A DNA stretch of 63,638 nt, the filler included, from Reticulomyxa filosa (Eukaryota; Protista; Foraminifera), in the NCBI GenBank assembly GCA_000512085.1. It is 19 parts of 19 records of this genome, joined end to end, with 100 filler letters (N's around TTAATTAATTAA, not from the genome) between each part and the next. Parts side by side here need not be neighbours in the genome. Positions count along the whole stretch, not along the records: positions 3,767 to 5,309 come from ASPP01018406.1; 18 more parts are not named here. One strand, 5' to 3'. The position numbers were made by a program, and so were the translations under genes. Under the pieces are notes generated by a model, which saw only the letters and a program-made list of their open reading frames with translations, ran no database searches and was not told the origin of the DNA. Below are positions 3,767 through 10,457 of this stretch, piece by piece. Within the stretch, counting starts at the first letter, position 1. Each line of letters begins with the position of its first letter.

Positions 3767-4084
3767 ATCGTGAACTGCCTGTTCGCCGTCATCCTGGGCG
3801 GCGGTCTCGTGCTATTCAAGAAACCGCTGCTGAAGCCGCTGTTCGGCGCGGCTTTCAGGCTGACCGACGAGGGCTGGTATCAGCTCACGATGCGCTGGAC
3901 GGTGTTCTTCTTCGTCTTGGCCATCGTCAACGAAGTCATGTGGCGCAACTTCCCGACCGACACGTGGATCGCCAGCAAGATGTTCCTGAGCTTCCCGCTG
4001 ACGCTGGTCTTCGCCTTCCTGCAGATCCCGCTGCTCCGGCGCTACTGGGACGGCGACGACAATCCCTTCGCGCGCGGAAGCTGA
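3767..4084 (+). CDS. yciB: intracellular septation protein A / inner-membrane protein YciB, C-terminal part (bacterial)
   Basis: KPLLKPLFGAAFRLTDEGWYQLTMRWTVFFFVLAIVNEVMWRNFPTDTWIASKMF...LTLVFAFLQIPLL matches the IspZ/YciB C-terminus. Codon usage is GC-rich bacterial. Confidence 0.85.
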   Translation: MVNCLFAVILGGGLVLFKKPLLKPLFGAAFRLTDEGWYQLTMRWTVFFFVLAIVNEVMWRNFPTDTWIASKMFLSFPLTLVFAFLQIPLLRRYWDGDDNPFARGS

Positions 4085-4113
4085 GGTTATGAAGAGCGAC
4101 CGCCACCTGCTCT

Positions 4114-4194
4114 TGTCATCCTGAGCGAAGCGAAGGATCTCACGTTAGCCACGGAGTGCGCTGGTCGCTCAGCTCGGTCCTTCGCTGCGCTCAG
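4114..4194. repeat. REP-like extragenic palindrome with its right arm truncated by the IS
   Basis: Left arm TGTCATCCTGAGCGAAGCGAAGGATC (4114-4139) and right arm GGTCCTTCGCTGCGCTCAG (4176-4194) are complementary at 17 of 19 positions. The expected terminal GATGACA is replaced by IS sequence. Confidence 0.8.
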
Positions 4195-4211
4195 CAACCA
4201 TTAAGAATGCA

Positions 4212-5169
4212 CTATGCGGCGACGCGGCGAGATGAGATCCACGGGGTGCCGCGGGCGACGACGGCGTTGACCTGGATGAGCATCTTGCGCGCACAGGCGA
4301 TCATGATCTTACGATGGGGTTTGCCGGCGGTCTTCAGGCGTTGACTACAGCGCCTTGATGGCCGGATTCCAGCGGAAGGCGGCCGCGAGGCTGGCGGCAT
4401 AGAGCGCGCGACGCACCCGATCGCGGCCGCCGCCGATGCGGCTCTGACCTCTCCATTTGCCCGACTGCCGCACGAAGGGAGCCAGCCCCGCCAGGGAGAC
4501 GATCGGTTCACGCTCGAGACGCCCGAGTTCGGGCAGCAGCAGCAGCAGGCTGAGCGCGGTGCGCTCGCCGACCCCGTCGACGCTCTGGATCAGTTGCAGC
4601 CGGGCCAGCAGGTCAGGCTCGGCGGCGATGCTCTTCATCAGCAGGATCCGCTCTGCCGCCTCGCGCCGTTCCAGCCGCTCGACCTCCCGGCGCAGGAAGC
4701 GGCGCACATGCGCCAGATGCGCGGCCTCCAGGCGCGTCTTGGCCCGCACCACGTCGTCCTCCAGCTGCTCGATCAGCCGCAGATGCTCGGCAAGGGGAAC
4801 CAGCCGCGCATCCGAAGCCTCGTGCACCTTGTCGAGCAACGCCGCGCAGGTGGCGATCAGCGCCGCATCCAGCGGGTCACTCTTGGCCCGGCGCAGGCGG
4901 TATTGCGCGAACGCCCGGACCTGTAGGGGCTGCAATACCGCTACTTCGAAGCCGGCCTCGCGCAACGTGCCAGTCACTTCCTGCGAGTACGAACCGGTGG
5001 ATTCCAGACCGACCCGCACGACCTGCGCCGCGCGGAGCCATTGGATCAGCTGGCGGTGGCCGGCTGCACTGTTGTCGAACGCCATGCGGTCTGCCGCGCC
5101 GTGCAGCGCCACGTCCAGCCGCGCCTTGCCGATGTCGATCCCGGCTACGACCATGCTAACATCGCTCAT
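4212..5169 (-). pseudogene. IS110 DEDD recombinase/transposase, 318 aa if a single-base insertion at 4345 is removed
   Basis: GIDIGK (D), LESTG (E), AKSDPLDA (D,D), DGVG and LAGLAP..RQSG (catalytic Ser region). The C-terminus YQRLKTAGKPHRKIMIACARKML continues in the shifted frame (ORF 4212-4511). Confidence 0.9.
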
Positions 5170-5309
5170 CTTCGTCCATCCTGCCTCGTCTTCGAACCTG
5201 GAGTTCGGGCAACCATCCGGATCGGGTGAAGAGGCCGGCCGCGATCTTGCTGAGCTCATCCCCCAAAGGGATCAGACGACGTCGATCCGACGACCGGCCG
5301 CGCGGGCCC
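5169..5309 (-). ncRNA. predicted IS110 bridge RNA (target-binding loop about 5233-5299, donor-binding loop about 5169-5232), 5'-truncated
   Basis: Two stem/internal-loop/hairpin modules with identical spacing. Guide segments match the insertion target (CTGAGC; YGTCATCC with wobbles) and the IS right end (ATGGTTGC). Confidence 0.85.
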
Positions 5310-9288: not shown

Positions 9289-10457
9289 TTATGTTATCTG
9301 AAACAATTCGTCCAAAAGTTTCCAAAAAGCTTGTCTCCAAGTCAATCGGTAACGGTATACTATTCCAAAAATGTTCGCTTTTCGGGTTCCATATGAATAG
9401 TTGTTGTAACTATTCGACAAGGCCATCCAATTTAATGAATAGTTGATCATTTTATCGGACACAGTGATGGTCTCTGTGGGTCCAATCCTCTCCCTCTCGT
9501 TCGAATATAAAACGTCCTTGAACACGGATTTGAGCTCATGTCCCAAATGCACAAATATACAGAGTCCATTTCGCTCAATTGTTCAAATGGTAACTCGATT
9601 TCTTTTTCTCCTTTTTTAATTTTATTCAAACAAAAAAATTTATCAAATGTCAAATTTTTTTTAAAATAAAAAAAATAAAATAAAAAACCTTTGATATCTA
9701 ATTGCAATAAATATCCTTCTTGATGTGAAAGTCGATTGACGAGCAAAAAGACGTAATGCAAAGACTTGGAGTGCTCGAGAATGACAAATTCAGCGGGGAC
9801 ACTTAGGACTGGACTCGGCAGAGATCGATGGGTCTCTTGATTGAACTCACAAATGGTATGCACACGCAACGTGTAATTATTGGGAGATGGAGTCAATGGC
9901 ATCCACACTTGCTGACACATGTGCGATTGTGCAGAGGTCTTGTGATAATGCTCACTAAACTCAATTTCATATCGAACTATTCCAATGGCTTGATAGGGCG
10001 AACTCCAACAGAGCCATTTGGAGGACTCGGAATTACTACGACTACTACTTTGATGATAATACATTCGAACCTGACTGGGAGGGGAGGGCTCAAAACCAGA
10101 TCTTTGCATAAACACTGGAGTTTTGAAGACTACTGGCCAACTCTCTTCCTTGTCTCATTTGTGTCGCATTTCATTGCACTGATCGTCACTACGTACTCTT
10201 GGTTTTCTTTTAATTCCACGCTCTTCCATTTACATTCGTTCTTCACTTGTCCCATCACTTCACCTTTCAAATGGTTATATTCACGGATCACATATTCAAT
10301 CGTCGTCTCCGTTGTCTTTTCATCGCTTGCTTCGAATATCGCCGGCTTCCAGCTCATATTCACACTCGTGAAAAAAAATGCAGTCACGTGAGGGAATAGA
10401 GGTCGCACTGGCAGATGCTCAATACTCATAATCTCCTCCAAACTTTTATACGTCTTC
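9289..10457 (-). CDS. fibronectin type III-like domain protein, partial, multi-exon
   Basis: SVNMSWKP...EYVI...LKENQEYVVTISA and WLCWSSP...IVRYEIE...NYTLRVHT...RSLPS resemble FN3 repeats. Confidence 0.45.

Follow-up and report, generated by a model that had tools for sequence, protein, structure and literature searches.

An IS110-family element in one arm of an intergenic palindrome downstream of yciB, and its probable placement by a bridge RNA

The window analysed here is a stretch of 63,638 nucleotides compiled from the Reticulomyxa filosa assembly GCA_000512085.1. One of its parts, the 1543-nt piece at positions 3767-5309 (ASPP01018406.1), comes from a Reyranella-like bacterium. The piece begins in yciB/ispZ, with the C-terminal 104 residues of the IspA/YciB septation protein, and 29 nt separate the stop codon of this gene from the start of a two-armed palindrome. 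The second arm of the palindrome is interrupted by an IS110-family insertion sequence (IS) on the minus strand, with about 140 nt of non-coding sequence upstream of the transposase gene within the piece (Table 1). The edge at 5309 falls inside the IS. The piece therefore holds the right-hand 1115 bp of the 1180-bp element, whereas the first 66 nt of the left end and the left flank lie past the edge, and the left target of the window copy is inferred. An exact look-up with the truncated transposase of the window found no matching contig, so the left flank was not recovered.

Table 1. Positions of the features on the ASPP01018406.1 piece, numbered along the window
Feature	Position	Strand	Basis
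3' part of yciB/ispZ (intracellular septation protein A)	3770..4084	+	Pfam PF04279 IspA, E=1.1e-25; ORF list
Palindrome remainder, 81 nt of the 88-bp two-armed repeat	4114..4194		Inverted repeat; constant 81-nt remainder in 9 canonical sites; intact L029 orthologue
Unoccupied candidate target TGTCATC-CT-GAGC, free arm	4114..4126	+	Sequence; same left-target variant used once, in L004
Core dinucleotide CT at the IS right-end junction	4193..4194	-	CT at both ends in 12/12 complete copies; right end 14/14
IS110-family element, element positions 67-1180 of 1180	4195..5309	-	98-99% nt identity to L001-L007; multi-copy alignment
IS right end, 17 nt after the stop codon, terminating ...AATGGTTG	4195..4211	-	Matched by the left donor guide
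Transposase (recombinase) gene, DEDD/RuvC-like and Tnp (Ser) domains	4212..5169	-	Pfam PF01548, PF02371
Bridge RNA donor-binding module (predicted)	5176..5224	-	Fold; consensus structure; guide matches to the IS ends
Bridge RNA target-binding module (predicted): outer stem, internal loop, inner hairpin	5233..5299	-	Fold; compensatory pairs; guide-target covariation

The inverted repeat reported by the search tool has arms of 17 nt at 4121-4137 and 4178-4194, which are 94% complementary and can be extended by eye to about 4139 and 4176. As a single strand, the palindrome folds into a long hairpin, and each arm is also able to form a small local hairpin, ATCCT-N11-AGGAT. The arms are of two types, the A-type with the head GTCATC and the inner end GGATC, and the G-type with the head GTCGTC and the inner end GGACC, and this A-type/G-type pairing is seen in empty and occupied palindromes alike. 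The free arm of the window is A-type (TGTCATC at 4114-4120, CT at 4121-4122, GAGC at 4123-4126), and the occupied arm belongs to the GGACC type. The latter is cut after ...GCGCTCAG at 4194, and IS110-family sequence begins at 4195. The AG at 4193-4194 on the plus strand corresponds to CT on the minus strand, on which the junction reads ...TTCTTAATGGTTG, CT, then GAGCG.

A genome scan with the transposase revealed seven copies with 98-99% nucleotide identity on NZ_OZ257251.1, the complete chromosome of a Reyranella sp. metagenome-assembled genome (MAG), as well as a 90% copy in a Rhodospirillales MAG, one contig-sized copy and elements less closely related. Four additional insertion sites, on other contigs of the sample from which the Reyranella MAG was derived, came from an exact-protein look-up. 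The comparison comprises 12 other complete copies at distinct sites, most of them from this MAG and its sample, and two copies with the right end only. The window copy differs from one of them, L001, by seven substitutions and a 1-nt insertion. The ends of the element were set where the similarity of the flanks starts and stops in a multi-copy alignment, which yielded a unit of 1180 bp running from CGTCTTAGC... to ...AATGGTTG, with CT at either side. Comparison of the two ends showed that terminal inverted repeats are absent, and the duplication is limited to the 2-nt CT core.

In all 12 complete copies, the left flank is [T/C]GTC[G/A]TC-CT, represented by TGTCGTC at six sites, CGTCGTC at five and TGTCATC at one, and the right flank is CT-GAG[C/T]. 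GAG opens the right flank at each of the 14 right junctions, followed by C at 13. The first-pass annotation of this DNA had placed an IS110 element at the CT core at 4193-4194 (minus strand), in one arm of a repeated palindrome, and had proposed looking for further copies at the same offset; its coordinates are right, and both the complete and the right-end-only copies share the offset. Its prediction that the left junction reads GTCATC-CT and then IS holds for the general form, GTC[G/A]TC-CT, but GTCATC itself is the exception (1/12, against 11/12 for GTCGTC). When the flanks are joined, the 88-bp palindrome is restored: the palindrome remainder and the displaced heptamer add up to 81 + 7 = 88 bp at nine sites, the window included. 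Three sites carry instead a repeat of 121-149 bp that has only the 13-nt head in common with the 88-bp palindrome, and one site (L007) has the head alone. The longer repeat is a second targeted palindromic family, with inner GTCGAAGGACCTCTTTTC... arms and the same 13-nt head, CGTCGTCCTGAGCG (L005:3975-4095, L006:3975-4117 and L112).

An empty counterpart of the window site was recovered by a metagenome scan with the YciB fragment. In L029, whose YciB is 96% identical, an intact, IS-free 88-bp orthologous palindrome lies at 10326-10413, flanked by yciB and a NUDIX gene in convergent orientation. The spacer is almost the same as in the window and unlike those of the paralogues, and at the point at which the window changes to IS sequence, ...GCGCTCAG is followed by GGCGACA. 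Intact palindromes without IS are also found downstream of yciB in L057, L058 and L082, and these four are the only palindromes in 769 kb of yciB-centred metagenome loci, which contain none except beside yciB. The heptamer displaced in the window, however, was probably not GATGACA as first proposed. Because the head of the occupied arm is GTCGTC in the paralogues and GTCGCC in the L029 orthologue, GACGACA or GGCGACA is expected for a G-type arm. Given that the junction offset recurs in all other copies, that the palindrome length is constant and that an empty orthologue exists, the junction in the window is not a product of chance.

The palindrome is not a fixed component of the yciB locus. 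It is absent downstream of yciB in L022, L025, L034 and L072, relatives as close as L029, and since some close relatives have it there and others do not, the 88-bp palindrome is itself variably present. In L028, L030 and L031, the position is occupied instead by an intergenic insert of a different kind, ~150 bp long and carrying hairpins (GGCCGAGCAGA.CTCGGCC, GGACATTGCTTGCAATGTCC), which may be another small repeat or an RNA. An exact look-up with the genes adjoining two other insertion sites retrieved occupied contigs only, and no empty allele within the sample.

The regular association of the element with the palindrome could be explained in another way, namely that the palindrome is no target but a part of the mobile unit, either as a terminal structure or as cargo carried by the right end of the IS. 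The palindrome, or at least its head, does adjoin the right end in every copy. However, the spacers of the palindromes vary widely between sites, although the IS copies beside them are 98-99% identical, and the longer repeats and the solitary head of L007 share only 13 nt with the canonical sites. In addition, the palindrome occurs intact without any IS in the four yciB loci described above, and the 7 nt to the left of the IS complete it exactly. This explanation is thus largely refuted, and we regard it as barely credible. We give just as little weight to the idea that the juxtaposition of yciB, palindrome and IS is an assembly chimera formed at a repeat. A short piece that ends inside an IS is typical of repeat-broken assemblies, and the 1-nt indel of the window could be an assembly or sequencing error. 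A chimera would nevertheless need to have formed precisely at the CT core, at the very offset of the 12 complete copies, and next to 81 nt that represent the yciB-locus copy of the palindrome, with the spacer of L029 and not that of a paralogue. The evidence therefore favours a genuine insertion into the palindrome.

The element encodes a recombinase of the IS110 family. Pfam identifies the DEDD_Tnp_IS110 (PF01548) and Transposase_20 (PF02371) domains in the window, and the intact 318-aa protein scores 161 bits against NCBIfam NF033542, 'IS110 family RNA-guided transposase', for which the cut-off is 140. The intact protein aligns end to end with the structures of IS621 (8wt6, E=1.8e-26) and ISCro4 (9t56), and the Asp/Glu/Asp/Asp residues and the serine of the SG motif are kept in the columns aligned to both. 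In the window, an extra G at 4345 generates a premature TAG at 4347-4345 (minus strand), and the C-terminal 44 codons lie in another frame that runs to the TAG at 4214-4212. The sequence is CTGTAGTCAAC in the window and CTGTATCAAC in all relatives (within 4350-4341, minus strand), and the frameshift is therefore private to the window copy, reflecting either decay or a sequence error. If the insertion of the extra base is real, this copy would be non-autonomous, though it could still be mobilisable in trans.

Because only 17 nt follow the stop codon, a guide RNA must lie upstream of the gene, which is the arrangement of the IS110 subgroup, and a 3' RNA of the IS1111 type is excluded. The left end (206 nt of an intact copy) folds with z=-3.8 into a GC-rich hairpin, followed by a module consisting of a stem, an internal loop and a hairpin, and then by a second module of the same kind. 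The consensus structure across relatives, in which the window copy was included, has the same fold with four compensatory pairs, and the window is identical to L001 across the aligned stretch of the left-end RNA. Neither this RNA nor the palindrome matched a family in Rfam, and the RNA is therefore identified by analogy and by covariation.

The two internal loops contain the sequences expected of guides. On the 5' side of the first loop, the left target guide (LTG) CGUCGUC at 5281-5275 has the same sense as the left target. The 3' side contains the right target guide (RTG) and handshake bases, GAGCUCAGCAA, at 5257-5247, in which GCUCAG is the complement of CT-GAGC, and CAA that of the terminal TTG of the IS. 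In the second loop, the left donor guide (LDG) GGAUGGUUGCC at 5218-5208, on the 5' side, repeats the right end AATGGTTG-C, and the right donor guide (RDG) AAGACGAGGCA at 5192-5182 is the reverse complement of (C)CT-CGTCTT. The sequence C-CT-CGTCTT combines the final base of the left target with the core and the left end of the IS, and the G that follows the RDG pairs with this final C. The second core base has no Watson-Crick match in the left guides, as the LTG ends in ...UG and the LDG in ...CC, against CT. A further GTCGTC, in the outer stem of the target module (GGCCGGTCGTCGG), was considered as a guide and rejected, since relatives that have other targets retain this segment of the stem unchanged.

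A perfect 14-bp GC-rich hairpin lies directly 5' of the target module (L001:2839-2870, left-end positions 45-76), and the window holds only its 3' edge, at 5300-5309. The Methylobacterium relatives keep this hairpin through two compensatory changes, GGGCCCGG to GGTCCTGG with the 3' side matching. Possibly, it forms the 5' portion of the bridge RNA or insulates the element from read-through. Scans for promoters and terminators in and around the element yielded nothing, including no convincing sigma-70 promoter in the left end, and the scan of the reconstructed circle junction gave only 6/12 promoter matches, so that no junction promoter is claimed. The co-directional arrangement of the IS with the upstream gene was considered as a sign of read-through expression and is uninformative, because sites between convergent genes give this geometry with either arm.

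Related elements allowed the guides to be compared with their targets. The recombinases of elements in Methylobacterium (L010 and L012), on a Defluviicoccus vanus plasmid (L102) and on Sinorhizobium meliloti pSymB (L101) are 47-53% identical to that of the Reyranella element; these relatives are annotated only as 'IS110 family transposase' in their records, and the same annotation is given to the nearest annotated relatives in plasmid records, which do not exceed 51% identity. The scaffold of the bridge RNA is highly conserved in the Methylobacterium, Defluviicoccus and Sinorhizobium elements (79-83% nucleotide identity for Methylobacterium), and their donor ends are AATGGTTG-CT-CGTCTT or close to it, as in the Reyranella element, whereas guides and targets differ at covarying positions. 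Guide and flank change together across five lineages, four of which are more distant relatives. While the Reyranella LTG CGUCGUC corresponds to the target GTCGTC, that of Methylobacterium L010/L012 is CCUCAUC with the flank CCTCATC-CT, and its RTG is one base longer, matching CT-GAGCC. L011 has CCCAACC against CCCGACC on the left and GUAG against CT-AC on the right, and the Sinorhizobium LTG CCGGCAC corresponds to CCGGCAC-CT. In Defluviicoccus, 5/7 left positions are matched, together with ACG on the right. Of all the evidence that site choice is guided by the RNA, this covariation is the strongest. The right junction of the Sinorhizobium element (L101:1660-1690) reads AATGGTTG-CG-CT-TCTCC, 2 bases beyond the prediction from the donor guide, and its target is a different GC-rich hairpin repeat (CTTCTCCCCGCAAGCGGGGAGAAG).

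The guides also bear on the choice between the two arms. Eight palindromes have one arm of each type, and the IS occupies the G-type arm in seven of them (the window being assigned by its GGACC) and the A-type arm in one (L004). The 7/8 bias hints at a preference for the G-type arm but carries limited weight (one-sided binomial p about 0.035), and the ratio becomes 5:1 when the two palindromes whose unused A-arm has a mutated core are set aside. The G at position 5 of the LTG faces C in GTCGTC and T in GTCATC, forming a G:T wobble in the latter, and in the GTCGCC head of L029 and L006, a G would stand opposite the U at position 6. Position 1 of the left target, T or C, is evidently not read by the guide. 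Among the 12 left targets, 11 match perfectly and one has the G:T wobble, and because the perfect match is used 11:1, the GTCATC variant is tolerated rather than preferred. The suggestion of the first-pass annotation that wobble positions cover repeat variants is chemically sound, with a direct precedent in IS621, but concerns a variant used at 1/12 sites. Its claim of an unoccupied target in the left arm of the window holds in that the sequence is within the range of used targets, and TGTCATC-CT-GAGC is a plausible second target.

None of the 13 sites is doubly occupied, and 9 free arms retain a usable head. This could mean that the hairpin or cruciform of the repeat, recognized by protein or by its structure, mainly sets the site, RNA pairing being secondary, and that an insertion destroys the structure and thereby protects the other arm. 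A 2026 preprint on ISPpu10 describes a target-encoded stem-loop as an extra specificity determinant, and each arm is able to form its local hairpin. Nevertheless, the covariation of guide and target in five lineages is predicted by RNA guidance and not by structure alone, the head in L007 was used without a palindrome body, and a lack of double occupancy is what chance would give when IS copies are few and the free arm is disfavoured. We thus consider recognition mainly by structure improbable, and guidance by the bridge RNA remains the preferred explanation. Alternatively, the use of a target may need the whole palindrome to be extruded as a hairpin or cruciform, in which case the first insertion, by parting the arms by 1.2 kb, would shield a second arm that is still competent in sequence. 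This is a speculative proposal of low probability; if true, a bridge recombinase would show target immunity that depends on structure.

All insertion sites are intergenic, mostly between convergent genes, which fits the safe-harbour reading advanced at first. The repeat itself is usually found 5-30 nt from a stop codon. At least seven copies of the palindrome are present in one Reyranella MAG chromosome, every one located via the IS. Within about 160-190 kb around ten IS copies, no further palindrome was detected, and the sequence fetched there contains only two near-cognate heads, both inside genes. The repeat is probably sparse, with at most about a hundred copies per genome, and not a classical dense REP. 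The description as a multi-copy intergenic repeat accordingly stands with respect to copy number above one and strict intergenic location, but does not extend to REP-like density. One-mismatch sites within genes (L115:16019 and L119:9021) are unoccupied, as is a near-cognate GTCATC-CT-GGGC inside yciB at 3788-3800 (+) of the window, which differs at base 2 of the right target.

REP and REPIN repeats occur in hundreds of copies per genome and are characterized by an association with RAYT (a Y1 transposase) and a conserved GTAG-type head. The present repeat has the head GTC[G/A]TC instead of GTAG. The term 'REP-like' is fair for its architecture, a short imperfect extragenic palindrome with inverted arms, while REP-like abundance and RAYT association are unproven. 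A literature search with the repeat sequence produced unrelated primer matches only, and nothing on a 'CGTC-tagged repeat class'. The 13-nt head is common to at least two Reyranella repeat families, and the Methylobacterium repeat has a similar head, its target CCTCATC-CT-GAGCC...GAAGGATC resembling that of Reyranella. One speculative possibility, of low probability, is that an enzyme mobilising these repeats recognizes the head, and that this IS110 lineage has tracked it.

Taken together, we estimate a probability of about 0.9 that a bridge-RNA-guided IS of the IS110 subgroup has integrated into an 88-bp intergenic palindrome, at the head of one of the arms, between yciB and a gene that is, by orthology, the convergent NUDIX gene. 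By analogy with IS621, transcription of the non-coding left end would produce a bridge RNA whose first internal loop pairs with the target and whose second internal loop pairs with the abutted ends of the IS in its excised, circular form, AATGGTTG-CT-CGTCTT. The DEDD/Ser recombinase would then exchange strands at the CT core, leaving CT at both junctions with nothing else duplicated. The element would prefer a GTCGTC-headed arm, the perfect match to its guide, and would occasionally use a GTCATC arm through the G:T wobble. The element ends, the consensus of the targets, the empty site, the fold of the RNA and the guide-target covariation were obtained from the sequences compared here, whereas the strand paired by each guide, the circular intermediate and the catalysis are adopted from the literature. 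For IS621, base pairing is described between the left guides and the bottom strand and between the right guides and the top strand (PMC11208160), and the handshake bases pair with non-cognate DNA after strand exchange (PMC11208158). The natural target of IS621, ATCAGGCCTAC, differs from the loop-encoded ATCGGGCCTAC by an A-for-G, which places a G:T wobble in the left target (PMC11208160).

The present element resembles IS621 of E. coli in many respects. Both have a DEDD/RuvC-like and Ser Tnp recombinase, aligned over the full length, and a bridge RNA upstream of the gene in which the target loop precedes the donor loop. They share the CT core and the lack of terminal inverted repeats, target a repeated extragenic palindrome, accommodate a G:T wobble in the left target, and have handshake bases after the RTG and the RDG (PMC11208158). 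However, the identity between them is low, and the likeness is recognisable only by profile or pairwise HMM alignment. The target is GTCGTC-CT-GAGC here and ATCGGGC-CT-AC in IS621, and the guides differ correspondingly. The RTG pairs 4 nt beyond the core, compared with 2 in IS621, the left guides mismatch the second core base, and an extra conserved GC-rich hairpin is present 5' of the target module. Finally, the repeat of the host appears to be sparse, as opposed to hundreds of copies for IS621.

In Pseudomonas putida, ISPpu9 and ISPpu10 are likewise multi-copy elements, with several identical insertions per genome that each lie in a REP-type repeat (PMC12288879; ISPpu10 preprint), and the targets of ISPpu10 are often convergent pairs less than 200 bp apart (ISPpu10 preprint). 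The several near-identical copies per genome, each in a REP-type repeat, and the paired convergent targets are shared with the present element. In contrast, the host class, the repeat sequence and the guides differ. Furthermore, the stem-loop of ISPpu10 is located 5' of the left target, whereas the local hairpin described here spans the core and the right target.

Insertion into REP repeats, multiple copies, convergent target pairs and G:T tolerance are thus already documented for IS621, ISPpu9 and ISPpu10. The element is an uncharacterised member of the IS110 family, of a kind that is itself well understood, and the current understanding of IS110 biology is unchanged. It provides a clean natural example of bridge-RNA targeting in an under-studied alphaproteobacterial lineage, with 12 sites, an empty site, a full guide-target map and covariation across five related elements. 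The left targets, with 11 perfect matches against one G:T wobble, constitute a natural read-out of mismatch tolerance, and the element may be of some use in cataloguing natural bridge RNAs for genome-engineering scaffolds.
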